Program-made: the position numbers and the translations under genes
Assembly: GCA_025594325.1 (NCBI GenBank)
Contig: JANHCV010000001.1
Location: 1,674,001-1,738,000 of the forward strand
DNA: 64,000 bases
Origin: Blastocladiella emersonii ATCC 22665
Taxonomy: Eukaryota > Fungi > Blastocladiomycota
Direction: 5' to 3'
Shown: positions 6,070 through 23,103 of the stretch, piece after piece
Layout: each line of letters starts with the position of its first letter
How positions within the stretch are numbered: the first letter of the stretch is position 1
The notes under the pieces: model-generated
What the model was told of the DNA's origin: nothing
Database searches by the model: none
What the model saw: the letters and a program-made list of their open reading frames with translations, nothing else

Positions 6070-9000
6070 TCACTCGGCAAACACGACCGAGTTGCGCGCG
6101 CGCGGCCGCAGCGTGAGCACGAGCCCCTCGTCATCGTCGCTGCTCTCTTCCTCTTCCTCTTCGTCGCTCTCATCGGCGAACGTGACCCCGACCACGCCCT
6201 CGGCCGCCGCCGCCGCCTCCGCCGCAGCCTCCCGGTCGTGCCGCAGCGCCATGGCCTCGGTCGCCGTGAGCCACGACCGGAGCTGTGCCGCGACGCCGTC
6301 GTTGGCGAGCGGCGACGGCAGGTTGACGGGCGAGTTACCCGCCGACACGGACGCGGGTTTTGGGCTCGCGGACCGGCGCCCGTCGTGCTGGTCCGCTGCG
6401 GCGGCGGCGGCGGCCGTGATCTCGCTGTACCACGTCGGCGGCGTGTGTGCGAGCGCCACGTCCGCGGCGTGCGTGACAGCCTCGAGGAGCATGAGCGTCG
6501 ACGACGCGCGGCGCGGTGGCGCAGGTGCGTGCGGCGACGTGATAGTGGACCGCCGCCGCCGGCTCGACGACGACGCGCCGCTCGTCAGCGAGCCCGTGGG
6601 CGAGGTAGTGGGGGGTGCGGCGACCGGGCTGAGCGACGCGGCCGATGGGTGGAGCAGGAACCGTGGTGGTGCGGGGAGCGGCGGGAGGCTCGTGATGAGC
6701 GAGGGCGACGAGGACGAGGGGAACGACGGGAGGCTGCCGAGGTGAAGCGGCGGGGCAGGAGGGATCCGGCCGACGCTGCCGCGGCGACGGGCAACGGGTT
6801 TCCCGATACTGCTGGCGGGTGGCGAGACGGGGAGGCCGGCGGGCATGGGCGGCAGTGGTGGTGCTGCCGCAGGGGAATCTACATGAGGAGGTTCAACGGT
6901 GAGCTGGCGAACTTGACAAAAGTTCGGCGCCAATCGAAAGACGTACACTTGCCCGCCAGTGCGCGCTCGAGCATCCCGGGCGTCCACGAGTGCCGTTGCC
7001 GCCGCGCCTTGCGCTGCGTGCTGCTCGTGTGCATGTCGGTAGCCGCGTCCGCGTCCTCAGCGAGGTGGGGCGGCACGGCGCCGGGACGGACGACCGGGGA
7101 CACGCGTGCAGCGACGGCGCCGAGCGTGAGCGAGATGGGCGACATGCTGCTCCCGCTGCCGCTGCTGAGGAGGCCGCTGGAGGAGGTCGAGGACGACGAC
7201 GAGGAGCCGCCGGTCGAGGAAGATGGCGACGCCGATCCCGAGGACGACGACGAGGACGGGCAGTCGATGGAGACCGACGCGCGCTTGTTGGGCGCAGCCG
7301 TGACGAGGGTCTGCTCCGCGTCGCCGTCGGCGTCGTCAAACAGCGACAGCCGCCCGCCGTACACGGCGCCGACGTTGGGCGATGCGGCCACGACCGACGG
7401 CAGGGCGGACCGCGGGACGGCGAACACGAGTTCGCGCATGACGATCTCGGGCGGCGCGTCGGCCCGCAACGAGTCCTCGCGGACGAGTCCGGGCGCGACC
7501 GAGAACAGGACCGCGTCAGCGGCGGCGGCGTCGTCGGTGCGCTCACTGACCGTCTCCATGTGCCCGCCGACCGCGGGCGCCTCGAACCCGGCCCACGTCC
7601 ACCGCAGCAGCGGGTCCGCCGACATGATGTACGCGAACAGGCGCGTCGACCGCACCACGAGGTCCCACAGGTGCTGCGCGCGCGGGACGAGGAGGTGCGC
7701 CTGGTGCAAGATGCGGAGCAGGTCGATGGTCGTCGACGCAAACTCGCGGCGCAGGAGCGCGGCGAGGCGGTCCTCGGGCGTCGCTTTCGGATCCGCGAGC
7801 CACGAGGGGAGCAGCGCGTCGGGGACCGGGTGGTGGTCGGTGCCGCACTCGAAGAGCTCGTCGAACTGGCTCTCCCACGGCGTGCCGATGAGCAGCTCGG
7901 CCGCGTCGTCGACATCGTCCTCACCGTCGTCAAAGTCACCGAGCGACTCCCACGACCGGTGCGACGAGGCGACGGACGCGAGCGACGCGGTGCTCCGCGG
8001 GCGGCGCAGGCGGCGGGTCGCGGCGCCCTGCATCTGCTCCTGGACCGCCTCGACCTCGGCGGGGCACGTCACGAGCAGCACGGGGATCGCGTCGCGCGGG
8101 CGCGCGAGCAGGCGGCGCAGCAGCGGCAAGCAGTGCAGGTGCTCGAGTTTGGCGAACAGCCGGTAGCACGCGCCCGCGAGGTGGTGCGTCAGCAAGTACT
8201 GCGCCGACTTAAGCGCGTGCGCGTCGGCGGCGGCGGACTCGACGTCGCGCGGCGATGCGAGCGACGACGTGGACGCGGTGCGGCGCAGGGACGACACGGT
8301 GCCGAGCGCCGTGGGCGACGGGACCGGGGTCCGTGGCGGCTCGAGCAGCGCGGCGGGGACCTCGGACAGGCGCATGAAGGTCGACAGGCGCGACGCCGCG
8401 ACCGATTGCGCGAGCGACGAGGCGGCCCCGTACGAGCTGCGCGGGTGCGGCGACACGGGCGCGCTTGTGTCCGTGTAGTCGCCGTCGCTGTTGTTGCGCG
8501 CCAGCGGCTCGACGCGGTGATCGGCGGCGCTGCCGCTCCCCGCGTCGTGCGCAGCCGACGGCGACGCGGGCGTGAAGGCGGGCGGCACGCCGTCGGCGCA
8601 GGCGTGGCGCGTGATGAGCGTCGAGTAGAGGGCGACGACGAGGGTGCGCGGCGACCGCTGGTAGTGCAGCTGCAGGACCTGGCTCGTGTACCCGGCCCAC
8701 AGCAGGCGCATGCGCTCGACGAGGGCGTCCACGTCGGCGTGGTCGTCGGCGTAGATGCGCTCGAAGCGCGGCCGGCGCAGGCGGCGGATCTCGAACGGCG
8801 TGCGGGCCGGTGCGGGGAGGACGGTGGGGACAGCGGATGCCGCGGCGTGCGCAGTCGAGTTGAGCACCACGGCGCTCCCGTTGGTGCCGCCACGCGGCAG
8901 CGAGCTCGTCGAGTGGGTGCGGCGCAGCAGCGTGGATGCGCCGTGGGACCGGTCGAGCGTCGTGGGCGACACGGTGATGTCGGGCGCGACGATGCCGGCG

Positions 9001-9569
9001 AGGTGGGGCGGGATCGGCGCGAGGGGCGGTACCGCCGCGGTCGCAGCTGCCGCCATGACGGGCGTCGGGAAGGCCGTGTCGGGCGGCGAGGCGACAGGGC
9101 CCGAGGCGATGGTTGACCACGACATGGGCCGTTCGCGGGTGACGACAGACCCAGGTCTCCGGGAGCGCAGCAGCAGCGGATCGCGGCCGCGCGCCACCAC
9201 GGTCGCCGTACTGTTCGAGGAAGCGCTCGAGCTGCTGCTGGAACTTGCGGGGGCGCTCCCCGAGCTCGACGAGGAAGGATCCGAGGCATTGAGCGAGATG
9301 AGCGAGCCGCGCGGGTGCAGGAGCAGGCCGGGGGTGGCGACCGAGGCCGGGGCCGGCGCTGGCGCCGAGTCGATGGACGATCCCGAGGCGGACTGGCGGC
9401 GGTGGTGCGACGAGGCGCGCTTGCGGTGGTGCTGGCGGCGGCGCGGGAGCAGGCGGTCGAAGAGGGTCGGCATGCAGCGCGGCGCGAGCGGGCTGCACCC
9501 GGCGGGCACATCCTGCAGGTCGGCGCCGTTACTGGCGGCGCCGTCGCCGGTGCGGACGGGCTGCGACAT
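6070..9569 (-). CDS. Hypothetical low-complexity protein with a conserved helical core (family member A), 2 exons: 9569-6947 and 6878-6070, ~1143 aa
   Basis: Long ORF with a 68-nt GTACGT...TAG intron (6879-6946) that restores frame. Shares several blocks with 14624-17749. Start codon uncertain. Confidence 0.72.
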
Positions 9570-10491
9570 GTCGTGCTGGCCGCTCGCGGGGACGACAGAG
9601 CGAAGTGCGGGGCGCTGTGGCGCGGGTCGGGCGACTTGCTGTGGGCGGGAAGGTGGAGCGTGGGCCCGATTCGGCGAGTCGTCGGAGCGCGCGGGGGCAG
9701 CCGATGCAGCAAGTGCAGAGAGCAATAAGCAAGAGCCGAGTGCGTCGTGTGGAGCAGGCAGCTGCTGACCAAGTTGCGGTGCGAGGGAGAGAGCGAGGGA
9801 GGGGGAGGTGGCGGACGGAGACGATCAGCAAGAGTTTCCAGGGCAGGAGAACGGGGACCGCTTCGAGCGCTGGCGAGCGCTTTGCCCTGGAAAGCGCGGC
9901 CGGCCCGGTCGCATTCCCACACATCGCTGATGGCGAGCGACCCGTTGTCCTCCTCGACACTGGGAACCCCTTGCCCTCGCCCACACCGTCTACGCTTCCG
10001 ATCGGGATTCTGGTTCCGCAAAGGCGCTGCAGCGTTGAAACGTGTGGGAGCGGCTTGCGATGCCTAGCCGATTACGCGCTACGCCGCGATACTGCTTAGA
10101 GCTTCAACCTGGCTAGCGGATGGCGTCATGGATCGGCACGGACGTGTGCGGTGGAGGGAAGCGGCATTTCACATGATGTCTCGCACCCTGTCTCGCGGCC
10201 ACGCGACGCGACGCGCCACACGGTGCCTCGCGCGAGTCGGGCCGGCGCCGTGGCCATTGCACATCGCGCATCGGTTTTTCGCACCACCTGCACCCGCGCT
10301 CGACTCCCGTGCTCTCCCACCGGACATGCCTCCCGCGCCTTACGCGAGCGGGTGAGGCCGCGCTGAGGCCGTGTCCCTTGTCTGAGCACCCGAAGTAGCG
10401 CGTGATCCGCACACGGCAGCTAATTTGGACGATCCTGCTCCATGCTTGCGTGTCATATCGCGCCACGGCTACCACTGCTGAAGTTATCGCA

Positions 10492-13400
10492 ATGTACCCG
10501 CAATGGAGAACCATGGCGATTGCCGCCGTCGCCACCGTCATGATCTTGCTATCGGCGACCAGCGCCGTGCTCGCGACCAATCTCACGGTCGTGGCCATGC
10601 TGCCCATGTCGGATCCCGGTATGACGATTCCTCGGCACACGTCAGATCGGTGAGCTCCGTGACCTGACGGACGGTCCGCCTCTAGTCCTCGGCGGAATCT
10701 TCAAGGGCATCGCCAACGCGCTCTCCGTCGTGCCCGATGTCATTACGACCATCGACCCGGACCACAACTACACGGTGCAGTTCGTCGACTCGGCGTCCTC
10801 TCGCTTGACGGGCGTCAAAATCCTGAACGAGCTGGCCGTGGCCGGGCGCCCGATCCACGCGCTCATCGGCGACTACTCGTCCCGCGTGACGCTGCCCGTC
10901 GCCCTGACTGCAGCCTCGCAACGGCTGTGGCACTGCGGCGTGCCGTCATCCGTCGACTTCAACAACAAGGCCGACTTCCCGCTCTTCTACCGGACCGCTC
11001 CCGACGACTTGCAGGGCGGCCGCGCGTTGGCCATGGTCGTGCGGTCCATGGGCTGGGGGTCGGCCAACTTGATCGCGGTCGCTGATCCGTTTGGTCAGTC
11101 GCTGACCGAGAGCTTCATGGCCGCGGCCAAGTCGCTCGGCATTGACGTTCATTCAGCACAGCAGTACGCGCCGGGGACCACCAATTTCGCGCCGTTCCTT
11201 GACACGGTCGCGGCGAACGGGTCCAAGGTCACGCTTCTACTCGGATTTCCCGGCGACGCGCGACTCATTTTCCGCGAAGCAAAGTCGCGCGGGATGCTCA
11301 CGTCCGAGTGGGCTTGGGTACGACTCTCGCGTATCTTCCTGCGGCCTCAACTGACTCGCGATGCGCGCAGCTAGGGCCGGTGACCATGTCCATGTACCTC
11401 GACTCGTTCACGGCCGACGTCGACAAGGACCTGGCCGATGGCATGTTCTACGTGTTCCCGCTGCAGTCGGCCAACCCACAGTTACAGCGATTGCGTTCGT
11501 CGTACCTTGCCAAGTTCCCGAACGCGACCGCCGAGTCGCTCCTGGGGTACCCGCTCATGTACCTGGACTGCCTCATGTCGGTGGCTCACGGTGCGGTCTG
11601 TCGTCGGGACTGCTCATGACAGTCCTAACAAGTTGTGGCACTCTAGGGTTCAAACGCCTGACGGCAAAGTACGGCGACGCGGCCGTGCTGGCCAAGTCGT
11701 ACACGGCCAACCTGACCGAGTTCCTCGTGCCGTTTGACGGCGCCTCGGGCCCCGTCAGCTACGACCAATACGGCACCCGCCTCGCGTACGGTCGCGCTCG
11801 ACAGCACGCTCCCTCCCAACTAACCGCCCCCGCGATTCTAGCAACTGGAACGTGGTGAACATCGTCAACCGGCGCGCCGTCGTGACGCACGAGGTGTTCC
11901 TGTCCAACAACACGTTCGTGCAGCTCGCCGCCCCGCGGTTCGCCGGCGGCTCTGCAACAATCCCGCTCGACCGCCCGCCGCTCGTGCGCGCGTACCCGCA
12001 GTGGGAGGACGGCGGCGTGCAGGCGCTGGCGGCCGTGCGCGCGCTGCTGATCTCACTCCAAATCGCGGGCATGGTGCTGCTGTTCGCGTACCGCACCGAG
12101 CGCCGCGTGCGCCAGCTGTCGCTGCCGTTCCTCCTCATGATCGGCACGGGCTGTGTGCTGGTCCTCGCCAGCGAGTATTTCCTGGTGGGCGTGCCCACTC
12201 CGTTCCACTGCTTTGCCTCGCCCATCCTGCTCGCGTTCGGGTTCCAGATGGTCATGGCGAGCGCAGCCGCGAAAACGTACCGCATCTACCGCATCTTCGA
12301 CAACCGCGTTGGCGTGGCCATCTCCAAGGCGGTCCTGAAATCGCACATCCTGATCCGCAACGTCGGCGCCGTCCTGTTCGCGCAGGCCGTCCTGTTCCTG
12401 ATCTGGATTGGCGGGTTCCCGTCGTGCGTGACGCTGGTCCAGACGCGCACGCTGCTCTACTACGCGTGCACGTCGTCGAGCGTGGCCGGGTACTGGTTCG
12501 TCCTGGGCCTGTCGTTCGCCCTCAACGCGGTGCTCCTCGGCGTGGTCGTGGTCCTCGCGTACAAGACGCGCGACGTGGACTCGAGCTTCCGCGAGACGTC
12601 GTGGATCTTGTACACGGCGCAGAACGTGCTGCTGTGCGCCGTGGTCGTGGTCCCGCTCAGCGTGATCCCGCTCGACACGCTGGCCATGCCCGCGTACTAC
12701 GTGCGCGCGGTGGTGCTCATCTACGCCGTCATGTTCGCGTACTACGCGCTCGTCGGGCGCCTCGTCGTGACCATCCTGTCCGAGCGGTACGCGCCGCGGA
12801 CCGGGAGTCTCGCGGAAGCGCTCGTCACGCACACGGGCGGGTCGCAGAACGGGCAGCGGCTCGACGGTGCCGCCATGTTCGGCCCCGTCACGAAACGCGG
12901 CGGGGCCAAGCGGGCCGGGTCGATGGCCGTCATGGCCGCGTTGCAGCACGCGTCCGGCCCGCTTCCAACACCAGGCGGCTCGTGCTCGGCGACCGCGGCG
13001 AACCTGCCCAGCGCGTCCGTGCCCAACGAGCTCTCGGGCCACTACCCGGTGCTCCGTCGCGGGTCAGGGCTCGGGTTATTCGGCAGCATCGTGCAAACGT
13101 GGCACACGCACCACGTCTACGCGAACCTGCGGCCGACGGCGAGCCACATTGTGATCACGCCGCCGCAGGATCTCGCGACCGCGTCCAAGGAGCCCGGCGT
13201 CGCGCTCGGTCTCGGCGGGGTCGCGTTCGACGCGTCGCCCGCGGGCGTCCCGCCCGGGTGCATCGAGGTGATCCACCGCAAGACGGGCCGCGCGTGGGTG
13301 GTGCAGCTTGGCGGGGCCGATGAAGTCGCAGCGTGGGCGGCGCTGCTGCGTCCGGTGGTCGGTGCGACGCTGAGCACGGGCGCGGCCGACTCCAAGTCGC

Positions 13401-13540
13401 AGACGCGGTCGCAGGCGGGCAAGTCCAAGAAGACGAACGGGACCGAGTCCGGGAGCAAGACGGTCGAGTCAGCCGGGGCCCCGGCACTGCGACCATCACC
13501 GAGCTCGAGCGGGCCGAAGCCGATGGACGACGACGAGTGA
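10492..13540 (+). CDS. Class C (GABA-B-like) GPCR 1: signal peptide, Venus-flytrap/ANF ectodomain, 7TM and PH-like tail; 5 exons, ~938 aa
   Basis: Introns 10619-10685, 11318-11370, 11591-11646 and 11786-11841 give a continuous frame. Ectodomain motifs ALIGDYSSRVT and FPLFYRT; 7tm_3-type KTYRIYRIFDN; seven hydrophobic segments. Confidence 0.88.
11704..12777 (+). repeat. Left arm of a 1,074-bp inverted repeat (partner 18638-19711)
   Basis: Both boundaries were checked base by base and give no net indel. The supplied translations of the two copies match in the sense, alternative and antisense frames. Confidence 0.9.
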
Positions 13541-14623
13541 GATGTGCATGTCACCCGATAAACCTTGTTCCAACTCCGTGGGTAGGGGTGCCGACCTCGG
13601 GCGCGTGTTGTTCACCACCTCAAGGTGAAGTGGCGCGGCGCGTGCGCTCACCCGATCGCACCTGTCGCAGGTGATCGGCGACTCGGGCGGGTAAAGCCGA
13701 AGCGCGCGCGCGACGCGGCGGGGCTTGACCCTGCCGAGAAAGGGAAGGGACCGCGGCATTGGTCGCGCGCTGAAGAGGGCGCCACGCCTAATCATGACGC
13801 ATGCGGGCGTCAGCGCGGGTCGGGCCACGTTTGTCACCTCCCGCTTCGCGGCGGCGGCACGTCGGCGACGGGCCTCCGCAGCTATCCTAGCTGTCACGGC
13901 CGCAAGCGAGTCGCGTCTCCCCGCGCCTCGGCCACGACGACCGTGAGGCGCACCGCGTAAGGCAGGGCGACAAGACGAGTGAGGCAACCGTGGGCGGGAC
14001 CGCGGCAGCGGGTGATCGATCCGATGGAGCGTCGCTTTCGGCAAGCGGAATGATCGGGAGGCGGCGGGCAGGATAGAGTTCGGCACGAGCACAGCAACTG
14101 TGCCCTGCCATCACAGCGGGCCTTGGTCGGAAATGCCGCAACACGGATGGTATGTGGCAGCGCTCGGGCGAGGCGGCCGCGCTCTGGGTCGGCCGCGCGC
14201 GACCCCAACCGCTCCCTTCCGCCCTCCCGCGCTCCTCGCTCTCCCCGGCATACTAGCCTGTTTCTGCACTGCATCCGCCCTCGCCGCCCGCCGCTACCGA
14301 CCGTGTTCGTGATCGGGGTGCCCCTCGCGATCGCGTACTCTGCCCGCGCCGCGTCCCGCCAGACGAGTGCGCGCGCCCCCTCGCCGGTCACGGCGGATCG
14401 GTTGCCGAGGCGCGCCGTTCCCCGCAATCTGCAATCCGCAGCCGCCGCCACCACCGCCGCCTTCTCACCGACGCGCGCGCTCTGCTGCCCTCGCCGCCCT
14501 CGCGCGATCGCTCTCCCCGACTTGCTGCAACGCCCGCGGCTGCCTCCGAGGCACTCGCTCAAGGTGCATTCGCCCTTTTTCCCTCGCGCGGCCCGTCCCA
14601 CCCGCTCACTGCTCGTGTTTGCC

Positions 14624-17600
14624 ATGCAGATCGCCCGTCCGCCCCGGCTCTCGCTCGCCGCCGTCGCCCAGCTTTGCCTGCCCGCAACCATGACCGGCAC
14701 CGACTCGTCGCACTTTGCTCCGCGCACCCCCGGCATCCCGCGCTGCATGCCGTCGCTCGTCGCCCCCTCGCACTCGGCCGACTCGCCGCGCGTCGGCGCA
14801 GCCGCCATCCAGCGCATCGCCGCCGACACCGCCGCCACGGCACCAACAGCGTCGGCGTCTACTCCACGCACCAGCAACCCGCCTCGTCGCCGCTCGGCCG
14901 CTGCGGGCGGTGCTGCCCCACCATCCATGCCCACCGCAACACATGCACCGCCGCGCAAGTCGTTCCTCGGCCAGGCCGCTTCCCTCCTGCGCTTCTCGCA
15001 CCGCCGCAGCGCACCGGCCACCGCCGTCATCCCGCCCATGCCGACGCGCCCGCGATCTGCCCCCGCCACCCAGCAGCTGCAGCTGCAACCGCCACCGCCC
15101 TGCCCGCTACGCCGCCGCGAGCCCCGCTCCTCCAAGAAGCACCGCGAGCGCCACGGTGACGACGACCGCGACGACGAGAGCACCCGGATCCGCGCCGATT
15201 GCACCGAAACGGAGCGCAGCCCAGACTCCGAGTCGGACGCCGCCGCTGCCTCGACCTCGACCTCGGATCCGGCGGCCGCGCCGACCTCGTGGTCGCGGCG
15301 GCTCCGCCGATCGCTCGCCCGCCGCGCCGGCAAGAGCAGCGGGAGCAGCAGCAGTCGCAGCTCCAGTCGCAGCGGGAGCGCCTCCTCGCCCGGCAGCGAC
15401 AAGGCAACCCCACCGCCCCCGCTACCGGCCTCGCCCGCGACCCCGTCGCCGCTCCTCGCCGCGTGCTCGCACCACCGCCGCCCCACATCGCGGCCCCGCT
15501 CCGCCACCGGGTCGCGCTCGCGGTCCCGGTCGTACGCCCGATCGCCGTCGTCGCCCGCCGCGTCGCACGCGGACGTGTCGTCGTCGCGGTCGAGCCGTCG
15601 CGCGCGCAGCCGGATCCGCCGTGGCGGGACACCCGCTCCACACGTCCACGAGGACCTGCACCTGGCCTCTTCGGCCGACGACGAGTCGGGGTCCGAGTGC
15701 GAGACCGACGGCCGCAATGGCGACGATGGCGCGCACAGCATCGCGTCGGACGCCACGGGCCTGCACCGCCGGCGCAGCCGCCGCCGCAAGCTCGACCGGA
15801 TCCACAGCGACGAGCGCGACGACCCGCTCGCCCTCGTGCAGCGCCTGCGCCTCGTCTGGACGCTGTCGGCGTCCGAGCTGCTGCAGGAGAGCTACCAGAA
15901 GTCGGCCCGCGCGCTCGTCGTCGCCCTGTACTCGGCCACGCTCGTCGAGCCCGGGTCCGCGGCCGGCGGCGCGCCCGCCTCGCTCATCGGGTCGCCCGCC
16001 TCGTCCACCAACGGGTCCGCCGCGTCGCTCGACACGGGCGCGAGCCCGAGCCCCAGCAACGCCGCCGCCGCGGGGCTCGCGCAGCTCCGGTCCATGCTCA
16101 TGCACTCGTCAGTCCCGCGCGAGCTCCTGGTCCCGCCGCAGGGCACCGTGCCTGGCCCGACCGTCCTCAACCGCCGTGGGTCCGCGCACCGCCGGTCGCG
16201 CGGCCAGTCTGACCGCCTGAGCGCCGAGCCCGACGTCCCGCGGCCCGCCTCGATCCAGCGTCTGTACGACGCCGTCTACGGCGACGCCTTCGAGCACCTG
16301 ATCACCGACTCACCGCCCACGGCCAGCCCGACGGCCACCTCCTCGCCCACGTCGCCCGCAAGCGCGTCGCGGTTTGGGTCCGCCACCCTGCCGACATCCC
16401 CCAGCACGCCGACCGTAGCGGACCTCGAGACCCAGGTCCGCCTCGCGGGCGGCCGCGCCGACGATATCGCGGCCGCCGAGGCTGCCCACACGCTGCGCGT
16501 CGCGCACATGCTGCTGACGCACCACCTCGCCGTGGCGTGCCTCGACGCGGTCGTCCGGCTCGAGCCCATGCACCTGATCGTCGTCCTCGCGCGCCCGCGC
16601 GACGCGCTGCCCGAGATTCTCCTCGACTGCCCGTCGCCCGCCAAGGTCGCTGCCATGCTCGGCGTGCCCGTGCGCGATATCACGGGCGAGTCCTCGCCTG
16701 ACCACGCGATCGAGGACGACGCTGATGAGGCGCACCCGGCACCCGCACCCAACTCGATGGCCGCGTGGGCGCTCGAGGTGCGCCACGCGCTGTGCGCCGC
16801 GGCCGTCGGCCTGATGCGCGCGCTGGTCCAGGCTCGCCTCACGCGCCCGCCGCTCGCGTACCTGTACGCGTCGCTGCTCCGCGCCGTCCGCCTCGCCGCG
16901 TACGTGTACGCCGTCGACCCCTCGGTCCAGTGGGTCTGGTCGCCGCGCGACGCCCTCGTCAGCGGCACGTCCATGGAGATTGTCGGCGGGGTCCCGCCCG
17001 GCGGGGACGGAGATGGCGATGGTGGCGACGCGATCGTCCTGTTCAGCGTGTGTCCCGGCCTCGTCCTCGTCACGGGCTCGGGTCCCGCCGAAGTCAACCC
17101 CGTCGCGTCCGTCGCCGCGGCGTCGAGCGCGTCGCTCGCGCCGAGCCCGAGCGGGTCGGCGGCTTCGGGGTCGCAGCTCGCCGAGGCGACCGCCGCGTCG
17201 ACGGCGCAGCGCGGGATCGTCCTCGTCCCCGAGCAGGTGTTCGCGATCCGGTCGCCGCTGCAGGACCTCGACGCCCTCGCTGCCGCGTCGCCCGCGTCTT
17301 CGACCTCAATCAGCCCACGCACGTCGCCGCCCAAGCCCAAGCCTGCAGGCCACTCGCGCAAACACCGCAGCCAGACCCAACAGCAGCAGCGGTTCCGCCC
17401 GCACCACGGCGCCACCGCCGGCCGGCCGTGGTCCAACACGTCGTCGCTCTCGGCCTCGTCATCGTCCTCGATCGCGACCATTCGCGTCGAGTCGGACGGC
17501 GACGAGCCGTTCGTCCCGCCGCTCCCGCCCGTCCCGCCGATGCCCACCAACGCCGAGGGCCCGTTCGCGTACGCGTACGCCGCGCCGCCGCTGCCCGAGT

Positions 17601-17749
17601 TCTTTGCCCCGGCACCACCTCCATCGTTCTCGTCCCTCGACGCCCCGCTAATTCTGCTCCCACCACCCGCGCGCGCACGCAGCGCGCTCGCTCACGAGAT
17701 GGTCGGCCTCGGGCTCGAGGAAAAGGGCACGGCTGCGCCCGCGCCGTGA
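14624..17749 (+). CDS. Hypothetical low-complexity protein (family member B), intronless, ~1041 aa
   Basis: Long ORF paralogous to 6070-9569 (LVVALYS, LLTHHLA, LARPRDA, LFSVxPGL blocks). ATG 14624 follows a pyrimidine-rich leader; start uncertain. Confidence 0.75.
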   Translation: MQIARPPRLSLAAVAQLCLPATMTGTDSSHFAPRTPGIPRCMPSLVAPSHSADSPRVGAAAIQRIAADTAATAPTASASTPRTSNPPRRRSAAAGGAAPPSMPTATHAPPRKSFLGQAASLLRFSHRRSAPATAVIPPMPTRPRSAPATQQLQLQPPPPCPLRRREPRSSKKHRERHGDDDRDDESTRIRADCTETERSPDSESDAAAASTSTSDPAAAPTSWSRRLRRSLARRAGKSSGSSSSRSSSRSGSASSPGSDKATPPPPLPASPATPSPLLAACSHHRRPTSRPRSATGSRSRSRSYARSPSSPAASHADVSSSRSSRRARSRIRRGGTPAPHVHEDLHLASSADDESGSECETDGRNGDDGAHSIASDATGLHRRRSRRRKLDRIHSDERDDPLALVQRLRLVWTLSASELLQESYQKSARALVVALYSATLVEPGSAAGGAPASLIGSPASSTNGSAASLDTGASPSPSNAAAAGLAQLRSMLMHSSVPRELLVPPQGTVPGPTVLNRRGSAHRRSRGQSDRLSAEPDVPRPASIQRLYDAVYGDAFEHLITDSPPTASPTATSSPTSPASASRFGSATLPTSPSTPTVADLETQVRLAGGRADDIAAAEAAHTLRVAHMLLTHHLAVACLDAVVRLEPMHLIVVLARPRDALPEILLDCPSPAKVAAMLGVPVRDITGESSPDHAIEDDADEAHPAPAPNSMAAWALEVRHALCAAAVGLMRALVQARLTRPPLAYLYASLLRAVRLAAYVYAVDPSVQWVWSPRDALVSGTSMEIVGGVPPGGDGDGDGGDAIVLFSVCPGLVLVTGSGPAEVNPVASVAAASSASLAPSPSGSAASGSQLAEATAASTAQRGIVLVPEQVFAIRSPLQDLDALAAASPASSTSISPRTSPPKPKPAGHSRKHRSQTQQQQRFRPHHGATAGRPWSNTSSLSASSSSSIATIRVESDGDEPFVPPLPPVPPMPTNAEGPFAYAYAAPPLPEFFAPAPPPSFSSLDAPLILLPPPARARSALAHEMVGLGLEEKGTAAPAP

Positions 17750-17853
17750 TCTCTTGCACACACACTTCTCCTTCTCCCTCATTCCTCTAGATTCTCGCCC
17801 ATGCCATGCACTTCTTGTTCCTAGAATATGTATTTTTTCGATTGCACAACAGC

Positions 17854-20800
17854 TCACGAGTCTTCGCTGACCGGCTTCAGCCCGACGCCGGCGCCTCGCG
17901 ACGCGGAGCCCGTTGAGGCGGATGTGACGGGGACCGCGGGACCCGGGCTGCTCCCGGTCCCAAGCGACCCGCCGCGCGCCTGCCCTCCGTGCTGCCGAGA
18001 CTGCGACCGCGACTGCGACCGCGACTGTGACCGCCCGTCGCTGCTGGACCCGAGCGTCGCCGCGACGACGGGCTTGAGCGCGGCTGCCCACACGCCCACC
18101 TCTTCGGCGCCGCCGAGCTGGACGACCCACGCGTGGCCCGACGTCCGGTGCACGATCTCGATACACCCGAGCGGGACGCCCGCGGGCGCCGCGTCGAAGG
18201 CCACGCTGCCGAGGCTCACGGCCACGCCCGGCTTGCGCGAAGCCGTCGCCAGGTCGGCCGGCGGCACGAGTACGAGGTAGCCGGAGCGTAAGTTTGCGTA
18301 CACCTGGTGCGCGTGCCACGTCTGCATGATGGCGCCGAGGAGGCCGAGGCCCGAGCCGCGGCGCAGGACGGGGAAGCGGCCGGAGAGCTCGGTGGGCGTG
18401 GCCCCGGGCATTGTGGTGGCCGCGCCGACGACGGCGGTCGAGGTCCCGCCCGAAACCGAGGTCGTCGCGGGAAGCGCGCCGACGGACATGGCGGCCAGCG
18501 CGGCGACCGACGAGGTGCGTTTCCCGCCGCGCTTGGAGACGGGGCCGAAGATGGTGGTCCCGTTCTGCGACGACGCGCCGATCTCGGTGACCAGGGCGCT
18601 CGCGAGGTCGGTGCCGCCGTTAGCGCGGCGTTCGGAGAGGATGGTCACGACGAGGCGCCCGACGAGCGCGTAGTACGCGAACATGACGGCGTAGATGAGC
18701 ACCACCGCGCGCACGTAGTACGCGGGCATGGCCAGCGTGTCGAGCGGGATCACGCTGAGCGGGACCACGACCACGGCGCACAGCAGCACGTTCTGCGCCG
18801 TGTACAAGATCCACGACGTCTCGCGGAAGCTCGAGTCCACGTCGCGCGTCTTGTACGCGAGGACCACGACCACGCCGAGGAGCACCGCGTTGAGGGCGAA
18901 CGACAGGCCCAGGACGAACCAGTACCCGGCCACGCTCGACGACGTGCACGCGTAGTAGAGCAGCGTGCGCGTCTGGACCAGCGTCACGCACGACGGGAAC
19001 CCGCCAATCCAGATCAGGAACAGGACGGCCTGCGCGAACAGGACGGCGCCGACGTTGCGGATCAGGATGTGCGATTTCAGGACCGCCTTGGAGATGGCCA
19101 CGCCAACGCGGTTGTCGAAGATGCGGTAGATGCGGTACGTTTTCGCGGCTGCGCTCGCCATGACCATCTGGAACCCGAACGCGAGCAGGATGGGCGAGGC
19201 AAAGCAGTGGAACGGAGTGGGCACGCCCACCAGGAAATACTCGCTGGCGAGGACCAGCACACAGCCCGTGCCGATCATGAGGAGGAACGGCAGCGACAGC
19301 TGGCGCACGCGGCGCTCGGTGCGGTACGCGAACAGCAGCACCATGCCCGCGATTTGGAGTGAGATCAGCAGCGCGCGCACGGCCGCCAGCGCCTGCACGC
19401 CGCCGTCCTCCCACTGCGGGTACGCGCGCACGAGCGGCGGGCGGTCGAGCGGGATTGTTGCAGAGCCGCCGGCGAACCGCGGGGCGGCGAGCTGCACGAA
19501 CGTGTTGTTGGACAGGAACACCTCGTGCGTCACGACGGCGCGCCGGTTGACGATGTTCACCACGTTCCAGTTGCTAGAATCGCGGGGGCGGTTAGTTGGG
19601 AGGGAGCGTGCTGTCGAGCGCGACCGTACGCGAGGCGGGTGCCGTATTGGTCGTAGCTGACGGGGCCCGAGGCGCCGTCAAACGGCACGAGGAACTCGGT
19701 CAGGTTGGCCGCGTACGACTTGGCCAGCACGGCTGCGTCACCGTACTTGGCCGTCAGATTCTGAAAGCCTACGTGGTCGGCATCAGCTCGCGTCAACGGC
19801 AGCGCGCAGTGAAGAACCGTACCGTACGCCAGCGACAGCAGGCAGTCAAAGTACATGATCGTGTAGCCTGAGAGAATGTCGGCCGTCGCGTTCGGGAACG
19901 CGGTGAGGTACGTCGACTGCAGCCACTGCAGCTTGGGCGTGACCGCTTGCCGTGGGAGCACGTAAAGGAACCCGTAGGCGTTGTCCTTGTCGACGTCGGC
20001 TGAGAACGAGTCCAGGTACATGGTCTGCGCCGCGGGCCCGAGCTACACATGGTAAGGGTGAGAACGCGGCCTTGCATTGACGAAGGTACAGGGACGCACC
20101 CACGCCCACTCGGCCGTGAGCATGTTGCGCGCCTTGGCCTCGCGGAAGATGAGCCGTGCATCGCCCGGGAACCCCATGATCAGGGTGACCTTGGACCCGC
20201 TCGCCGCGACCGTGTCGAGGAACGGGGCGAAGCTCGTCGTCCCAGGCGCGTACTGCTGCGCCGTGTACACCTCGATGCCGAGCGACTTGGCCGCGGCCAT
20301 GAAGCTCTCGGTCAGCGACTGCCCGTACGGATCCGCCACGGCAATGAGGTTGGCCGACCGCCATCCCATGGAGCGGACCACCTGCGCGAGCACGCGGCCG
20401 CCTTGCAAATCGTCGGCGTTGGTGCGGTAGAACAGCGGGAAGTCAGCCTTGCTGTTGAAGTCGGTCGATGAAGACACGCCGCAGTGCCACAGCTTCTGCG
20501 GGGCCGCGGCGAGCGCGACGGGGAGCGTTACCCGTGACGAGTAGTCGCCGACGAGCGCGTGGATCGGCTGCGCCGTGACCTGGTCGTTGAGCAGCTTGAC
20601 GCCCGTCAGGCGCGAGCCTTTGGTGTCGACGACCTGGACCGAGTAGTTGTGGCCCGGATCGATGGCGCTCATGGCGGCTGGTGCGACCGAGAGCACGTTG
20701 GCGATGCTTTTGAAGATCCCACCGAGAACTAGGGAGGGCCTTTATCAGTCCGGATCGCACGCCTCTTGCAACGGCGCATAGGGTACCTGCGTCCGACATG

Positions 20801-20925
20801 GGCAGCATCACGAGCACCGTCAAGTTGCTCGCTTGCACCGTGCTGGCCATAAGCAACACGGTGAACGCCGCGATGGCCAGCATCGCGATCGTGACGCGTA
20901 TCGACGGACCGGCGAGTCGATACAT
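17854..20925 (-). CDS. Class C (GABA-B-like) GPCR 2; 5 exons, ~948 aa
   Basis: Introns 20729-20786, 20043-20099, 19769-19822 and 19574-19629 sit at the same positions as in GPCR 1. Signal peptide, ALVGDYSSRVT, 7TM identical to GPCR 1, and PH-like tail. Confidence 0.88.
18638..19711 (-). repeat. Right arm of the 1,074-bp inverted repeat (partner 11704-12777)
   Basis: Reverse complement of 11704-12777, including the 56-nt intron. Confidence 0.9.
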
Positions 20926-22133: not shown

Positions 22134-22661
22134 GACTCTCATTCACGGAATATGATGTGCAGGTCACCGCTTTGCCTCGGATCGATAGGACCAGTCCGTG
22201 TCCACTCACACGCATCGGCTCCACTTCCTGCGCTTTCTTTGTTCACGCTTCATCACGGTCACTCAATGTACCACCCTGCCTTGAACATCTGCTCAGCAGC
22301 CAGCGACCTTTACCCGCAGTTGCTGGTTGGGTGTCGAGGCCGCGCATGAAAAGTGCATTGGGGCCGTTGCTACCGTTTCAGTAACGACGCGACTTGGTCT
22401 CGGCGAGGGAAAACGAACTGTGCGAGGGAGAGCCAGCCACAGGCGTGTGTGCGCGGAACCGGACCCTTCTTTCGAGTCGGGAAACGTTGACACGCGAATA
22501 AGCATAAATTTCTACGTCGCAGTTAAGATGTAGGGAAGGATGACGGTCATTGGGGACCGAGACGGCCTTTGGGAACCGACAACAGCCGCTCAAGCCTTTA
22601 GGTTACATCGTGGAACCTCGTTCACATTCACGGCGCGGACTGCTCGGCCTTTGAACCACAG

Positions 22662-22867
22662 CGTGTCCGTTCTGGCCGCGATAGGAACGCCGAGGCTCGC
22701 ACTGCGCAAGGGTGGGCCGGCTGCCTTGGACGACCTCACGCAACGCACGGTTCAACGTTGAACCGAGGAACGAGTACAAAGTGCGTTGCGTGAGGGCGTC
22801 CAAGGCAGCCGGCCCACCCTTGCGCAGTGCGAGCCTCGGCGTTCCGATCGCAGCCAGAACCGACACG
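22662..22867. repeat. Foldback/hairpin element: 87-bp inverted arms, 32-bp spacer, 18-bp perfect palindrome
   Basis: 22662-22748 versus the reverse complement of 22781-22867 differ at 4 of 87 positions. CGGTTCAACGTTGAACCG lies at 22748-22765. Confidence 0.9.
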
Positions 22868-23103
22868 TTCGGGTAGTCCAAGTAAAGTCGACCCACTTGC
22901 CTGGGTCAGTGGTGAAAGCCAGGACTGATGGGTGGCGCAGCGCGTGAGGACAGGGTTGACGGCCTGTACGGCTGATTTGGGAGGCTGACAGGCTGGGCAG
23001 CCGCCAGATCAGAGGCGATCACGGCTGCTCTCGGCTGCTCTGCTCTCGCTTGACCCCCCTCCACTGCGACGAATCTTTTCATTGAACTTGCTGCATTGTC
23101 ACC

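Follow-up and report, generated by a model that had tools for sequence, protein, structure and literature searches.

Two class C G protein-coupled receptor (GPCR) genes, here called GPCR1 and GPCR2, face each other in a 64,000-nucleotide stretch of the Blastocladiella emersonii ATCC 22665 genome (contig JANHCV010000001.1 of assembly GCA_025594325.1, forward-strand positions 1,674,001 to 1,738,000; this whole stretch is called the window below, and its first base is position 1), and they share a 1,074-nucleotide (nt) inverted tract that is the same in every base. This tract is very probably the product of very recent, and probably repeated, interlocus (non-allelic) gene conversion between the two inverted paralogues. 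It includes an intron and the whole seven-transmembrane (7TM) region, and the homologous gene parts on both sides of it are saturated with differences at silent sites. The predicted outcome is a pair of receptors in which the stalk and the 7TM core are identical, whereas the Venus-flytrap heads and the PH tails differ.

The identical tract

By direct comparison, the left arm of the repeat equals the reverse complement of the right arm at 1074 of 1074 bases (coordinates of all features are collected in Table 1), and the mismatches closest to this core lie at position 11703 on its left side and position 12778 on its right side. A repeat search delimited somewhat longer arms of 1129 nt that are 99% identical; they include imperfect shoulders beyond the exact core, with four mismatches in 46 nt on the left and two in 9 nt on the right. 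The whole is a long, near-identical inverted repeat around a unique segment, with exact 1,074-nt arms and 5,860 nt between them; each arm measures 1.1 kb and the complete inverted structure 8.0 kb. Two copies of the tract are present in the whole 32.65-Mb, 21-contig assembly, and its other matches there are short and only 68–81% identical. At the protein level the tract contains all seven transmembrane (TM) helices, preceded by about 79 residues of the stalk and distal ectodomain and followed by about 12 residues past the last helix (TM7). The initial annotation of the window, which was made from the letters alone, had claimed 1,074 bp of identity including a 56-nt intron and the synonymous sites. 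The exact arm alignment that it suggested as a check gives the core and shoulders just described, and the claim holds to the letter, with 56 of 56 intron positions identical and no synonymous difference.

Divergence along the two genes

Synonymous and nonsynonymous divergence (dS and dN) between GPCR1 and GPCR2 was calculated by the Nei-Gojobori method, exon by exon. In the ectodomain, dS is 0.73 for exon 2, 0.70 for exon 3 and 0.72 for the two together; in the tract there are 0 differences at 268.7 synonymous sites (which puts the 95% upper bound on neutral divergence at 0.0092, or about 1.3% of the flank dS), and beyond it dS is 0.95 for the tail after position 12777 and 0.96 for the PH region within that tail. 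Nucleotide identity runs in parallel, from 79.3% in exon 2 and 72.3% in exon 3 through 91.3% in the left shoulder to 100% in the core, and then to 58% in the linker after TM7 and 72% in the PH region. Introns 1–3 are 58–64% identical, whereas intron 4 is identical at all of its positions. The dN/dS ratio of about 0.2 for both the ectodomain and the PH domain indicates that outside the tract both genes are under purifying selection.

A GENECONV-type check by Sawyer's logic, in which the mismatch positions were shuffled in 10,000 trials, returned longest identical runs with a mean of 39.7 nt and a maximum of 102 nt, as against the observed 1074 nt. For silent third positions the observed run spans 344 codons and the permutation maximum is 57. 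The longest perfect matches between the two genes outside the tract are 47 and 21 nt, so that recombination between them can now readily start only inside the tract. The G+C content of third codon positions (GC3) is 0.953 in the tract and 0.87–0.92 in the adjoining coding sequence of both genes; the excess may be a weak signal of GC-biased conversion or may merely reflect the codon usage of a membrane domain.

Purifying selection alone is ruled out as the source of the identity, since silent and intronic sites are identical too. A simple recent duplication is also ruled out, since the sequences flanking both arms are homologous and yet saturated at silent sites. The initial annotation had proposed recent or ongoing conversion between inverted duplicates; this is strongly supported by the permutation test and by the step in dS, which is not uniform along the genes but falls from 0.7–0.95 in the flanks to 0 in the tract.

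Probable conversion and its boundaries

If the tract arose in this way, the two 7TM-coding regions would have joined in a recombination intermediate, in which one copy served as template and the other was rewritten, starting shortly after the beginning of exon 4, continuing across intron 4 and ending shortly beyond TM7. Conversion would stop where homology collapses, namely at the diverged intron 3 on the left and at the linker after TM7 on the right, with heteroduplex or synthesis tracts ending, or being rejected, where the partners cease to match. The high-identity region in fact begins 11 nt into exon 4, directly after the diverged intron 3, and its right end lies within a few codons of TM7 at an indel-rich, low-complexity linker whose alignment has many gaps; such positions are what a homology-limited process would be expected to give. 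The 7TM region has probably been convertible ever since the duplication, and the ectodomain exons and the PH tail would have left conversion earlier and would now evolve as independent genes under purifying selection. A 7TM region that had drifted ever since the flanks separated would probably recombine poorly, which suggests that conversion was repeated while the flanks escaped from it progressively. The recombination mechanism, its repetition and the role of heterology in setting the boundaries are thus what we infer from the pattern of divergence.

Several considerations weigh against gene conversion or narrow what can be said of it. The donor and recipient copies are indistinguishable. The evidence comes from one assembly of one strain, and the classical contrast between paralogues and orthologues within the tract needs a second genome. 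The correction by the assembler LJA or the subsequent Pilon polishing may have erased a few true differences, so the exact 100% is perhaps slightly overstated. Lastly, the GC3 excess is modest, so any signature of GC-biased conversion is weak.

The two receptor genes

Both genes have five exons, which encode a Venus-flytrap domain, the 7TM region and a PH-fold tail, and they lie inverted and tail-to-tail (convergent), 4.3 kb apart, with another gene between them. The last exon of GPCR1 is 100% identical to the NCBI protein H9P43_000611 (931 aa) of Blastocladiella emersonii ATCC 22665; the GPCR1 exon model was obtained by mapping this protein back with tblastn and checking for GT-AG splice sites, and the 56-nt intron 4 is consistent with the database protein. 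GPCR2 was modelled by tblastn of the same protein and boundary mapping, with searches and alignments made exon by exon. All of its introns are GT-AG, all of its exon frames are open and its intron positions are homologous to those of GPCR1. The 7tm_3 family (PF00003) scores 102.5 bits in both genes against a cut-off of 33.5, and PF01094 reaches 71.5 and 76.4 bits, where the cut-off is 25.4, with PF13458 matching as well. GPCR1 and GPCR2 are class C GPCR genes, with Venus-flytrap and 7tm_3 domains over the Pfam cut-offs; the Pfam matches and the low identity of introns 1–3 bear out the initial description of facing class C GPCRs with diverged introns 1–3, ectodomains and tails.

GPCR2 is missing from the five matches of a word-based protein search, despite 312 last-exon residues that are identical to the query. 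Either the public gene set may lack GPCR2, or its model there may have a length outside the range of that search. The nearest other proteins found by the search are Allomyces homologues, which are 41–45% identical.

Table 1. Features of the receptor gene pair and its surroundings (window positions, unless a contig is named) and of two further receptor pairs. AF2, AlphaFold2; pLDDT, predicted local distance difference test; pTM, predicted template modelling score.
Feature	Position	Strand	Remarks
Left arm, exact inverted repeat	11704–12777	+	GPCR1: last 82 nt of exon 4, intron 4, first 936 nt of exon 5
Right arm, exact inverted repeat	18638–19711	-	GPCR2: homologous gene parts
Extended high-identity tract with shoulders	11658–12786	+	Partner 18629–19757
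Spacer between arms	12778–18637		5,860 bp; contains tail 1, an unnamed gene (open frame 14123–17749, +) and tail 2
GPCR1 gene (H9P43_000611, 931 aa)	10513–13540	+	Exons 10513–10618, 10686–11317, 11371–11590, 11647–11785, 11842–13540 (stop included)
GPCR2 gene, intact paralogue	17854–20883	-	Exons ~20883–20787, 20728–20100, 20042–19823, 19768–19630, 19573–17854 (stop included)
Intron 4 of GPCR1, 56 nt	11786–11841	+	GT at 11786 to AG at 11841, CTAAC branch-like motif; GPCR2 counterpart 19574–19629
7tm_3 domain of GPCR1, wholly within tract	11999–12742	+	PF00003, 102.5 bits, residues 88–335 of frame from 11738
7tm_3 equivalent of GPCR2	18673–19416	-	
Venus-flytrap match (ANF_receptor / Peripla_BP_6) of GPCR1, exon 2, outside tract	10751–11320	+	PF01094, E 8.8e-20
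Venus-flytrap match (ANF_receptor) of GPCR2, exon 2, outside tract	20097–20672	-	PF01094, E 2.8e-21; 79% aa identity to GPCR1
Predicted PH-fold domain in GPCR1 tail, unconverted	13022–13366	+	dS 0.96; AF2 pLDDT 87.3, pTM 0.81
Predicted PH-fold equivalent in GPCR2 tail	18052–18393	-	
A, unnamed open frame, head to head with GPCR1	6879–9725	-	
B, unnamed open frame between the GPCRs	14123–17749	+	
L038 and L039	Contig 19, 1471500–1480500; contig 7, 3600–12600		97–98% identity over ~2 kb of ectodomain and 7TM
L040 and L041	Contig 11, 275000–284000; 459000–468000		Same strand, direct repeats 184 kb apart

Other class C receptor pairs in the genome

The genome contains 77 7tm_3 matches, which represent roughly 55–60 loci, and the 30 best 7tm_3 loci were compared in a search for mosaic pairs. 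Several of these 30 form such pairs. For the pair L038/L039 the proportion of synonymous differences (pS) is 0–0.14 through the ectodomain and the 7TM region and jumps to 0.26–0.45 as soon as TM7 is passed; the pattern resembles a conversion tract that is older and larger than that of GPCR1 and GPCR2 and ends distally at the same boundary. The pair L040/L041 has a tract of about 600 bp at 97–100% identity within a background of 50–88%; it begins some 180 nt before the 7tm_3 match and extends over about the first half of that match (about TM1–4, an estimate), and pS climbs gradually from 0 to about 0.5. Divergence between L042 and L043 is patchy. GPCR1/GPCR2 is the only exact pair, with an identical run of 1,074 nt where the next-longest among the pairs compared is 266 nt; on this measure its conversion appears to be the most recent among them. 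Conversion among class C paralogues looks recurrent in B. emersonii, to judge from these sequences.

Alternative explanations

The genome sequence was derived from PacBio high-fidelity (HiFi) reads (SRR19593111; mean length 10.5 kb, 6.37 Gb in all for a 34.27-Mb assembly, about 186-fold), which were assembled by LJA and then treated with purge_dups, and it was polished by Pilon with 65-bp Illumina reads (PMC9730499). Arms that truly differ might in principle have been made identical by the error correction, by repeat collapse or by the short-read polishing, all the more as the pipeline combined LJA correction, duplicate purging and Pilon, and over-polished near-identical repeats can yield perfect 1-kb identity. 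However, a HiFi read of mean length can span either the 1.1-kb arm or the whole 8.0-kb structure, and the flanks in which the two arms are anchored are unique and strongly diverged. Sequence that is about 75% identical cannot become 100% identical by polishing, the loss of a handful of differences would leave the conclusion intact, and older, imperfect tracts of the same kind are present elsewhere in the genome; an origin in assembly or polishing is extremely unlikely. A fold-back assembly artefact is ruled out on geometry, since it would be expected as a palindrome that runs to a contig end, whereas the tract is internal and has diverged sequence on both sides. The repeat might instead be the substrate of a flip-flop cassette, in which reversible inversion of the 5.86-kb spacer exchanges the PH tails between the receptor heads and flips the intervening gene, and the identity of the arms is a by-product or a requirement of the switching. 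The arms are in register and identical, so a crossover within them would keep both reading frames, and there is a fungal precedent in Saccharomyces, where a 4-kb inverted repeat of paralogous genes that is continually homogenised re-inverts a 24-kb region (PMC9731477). Inversion of the spacer, with an exchange of the PH tails, through a crossover between the arms is geometrically sound, but it is something that we infer and did not observe. The assembly shows a single orientation, no recombinase or specialised machinery was noticed in the spacer, whose one long open frame has no Pfam match, and the Saccharomyces orientation is reported to be stable on laboratory timescales (PMC9731477). In addition, the members of the other mosaic GPCR pairs are placed on different contigs or, as direct repeats, 184 kb apart, and inversion cannot be the purpose of identity there; a switching cassette is quite improbable as the explanation of the tract. 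It is similarly doubtful, and would be a long shot, that the spacer flips in B. emersonii populations or cultures to give both head-tail combinations, and that 7TM conversion bounded by domains is a general means of shuffling sensors and tails around shared cores.

Selected concerted evolution, in which conversion is retained as the receptors need a signalling core in common, for instance if they form a heterodimer that has two different Venus-flytrap sensors, is an unlikely explanation, although less so than those just discussed. It is well established that class C GPCRs function as dimers, both genes are intact and appear constrained outside the tract, the tract closely matches the stalk-plus-7TM module, and divergence between L038 and L039 likewise steps up at the boundary after TM7. 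On the other hand, no result of the analysis speaks to dimerisation, and the boundaries also match the collapses of homology at intron 3 and the indel-rich linker, exactly as a neutral process predicts. The upstream regions of the two genes are separate, and co-regulation is not obvious. The tracts of other pairs cover other parts of the genes, with the ectodomain included in L038/L039 and only the linker and the first part of 7tm_3 in L040/L041. The Venus-flytrap residues of GPCR1 and GPCR2 differ at 21% of positions in exon 2 and 40% in exon 3, and both genes keep stretches that HMMER aligned to residues 146–260 of mGluR3 (query 96–211), which are probably the ligand-contact motifs in lobe 1 of class C receptors that bind amino acids. 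Both Venus-flytrap domains thus keep these conserved stretches, which would weaken the initial idea of two ligand sensors; a difference in ligand specificity is only a possibility. The initial wording that conversion "keeps" one signalling core implies selection, and neutral, homology-limited conversion explains the pattern equally well.

The tails and the neighbouring open frames

A Pfam search of the GPCR tails gave no match, but a PH-fold domain is predicted with high confidence in both of them, and among the Foldseek PDB matches listed for the model nearly all chains are named PH domains. The PH module follows the 7TM region in at least five more class C loci (including L046–L050) and in the Allomyces homologues.

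The gene order is A(-) GPCR1(+) B(+) GPCR2(-), where A and B are unnamed open frames for which a Pfam search gave no match. They are weak paralogues of each other, mutually inverted and 30–47% identical at the amino acid level in patches. A single duplication and a single inversion were both considered as the origin of this order, and neither yields it. Upstream of GPCR2 lies a hairpin-forming inverted repeat (22655–22748 and 22781–22874) with 94-nt arms that are 93% complementary and a 32-nt loop.

Significance and comparison with known systems

No paper was found that mentions conversion in B. emersonii GPCRs, and the paper on the genome mentions only domain recombination and tandem duplication for them (PMC9730499). 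Gene conversion is already well known, and the tract, which appears to be an unusually clean instance of it, would not surprise a specialist; its value is that of a textbook-clean, datable interlocus conversion in an early-diverging fungus, in which an intron lies within a tract free of differences, the boundaries are sharp and the flanks are saturated. Several pairs in the class C family of B. emersonii, which has about 60 members, are mosaics, and because of this paralogue trees based on the 7TM region will mislead. GPCR1 and GPCR2 are also a natural chimera pair, with the same stalk and 7TM region and different heads and tails, that could show what head and tail each contribute to signalling. 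Should the spacer flip, it would be a second fungal inverted-repeat flip/flop, and one that recombines receptor modules.

The apparent joining of the Venus-flytrap domain directly to 7tm_3 recalls the GABA-B receptor (GABBR1/GABBR2); no exon piece had a Pfam match to a cysteine-rich-domain family (NCD3G-type) at E <= 0.01. The only end-to-end alignments of H9P43_000611 in the PDB are with GABA-B R1 chains (query 15–670 against chain 23–712), and these are weak (E ~6e-9) and no better than the 7TM-only matches to mGluR and CaSR. The likeness is limited, with sequence similarity that is very weak (E ~1e-9). The subunits of the GABA-B heterodimer divide the labour between them and are held together by a C-terminal coiled coil, whereas the B. 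emersonii tails are predicted to carry a PH-fold domain instead, and the two GABA-B subunits have differing 7TM domains whereas those of the B. emersonii pair are identical.

A parallel in geometry is the flip/flop region of Saccharomyces chromosome XIV, a 4-kb inverted repeat of paralogous sporulation genes that are almost identical through continual homogenisation (PMC9731477). Both are fungal inverted repeats of paralogous coding sequence that are, or in B. emersonii appear to be, homogenised by recombination, and in both a crossover between the arms would invert the interior. In Saccharomyces, however, the repeat consists of entire genes and strains with either orientation are documented, whereas in B. 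emersonii it is confined to 1.07 kb in the interior of each gene, with a 5.9-kb spacer, and the second orientation is unobserved in the single assembly.

Gene conversion is documented among chemosensory GPCR paralogues, including the class C OlfC genes (PMC6588630). There, as here, paralogues trade tracts, so that some parts are far more alike than the rest, and the events are detected by Sawyer-type runs of identical sites. The B. emersonii case differs in that it is found in an early-diverging fungus, in an inverted, convergent pair of genes that enclose another gene, and in that the tract is letter-perfect, intron included, and bounded almost exactly by the stalk-plus-7TM module. Limitation to one functional module, while other modules diverge, is also known from paired opposing leukocyte receptors such as KLRC/NKG2, in which homogenisation is reported to be limited to the ligand-binding domains (PMC3210942). 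The polarity would then be opposite in the two systems: in KLRC/NKG2 the ligand-binding part is homogenised and the signalling parts differ, whereas in B. emersonii the 7TM core is homogenised and the sensor and tail diverge.

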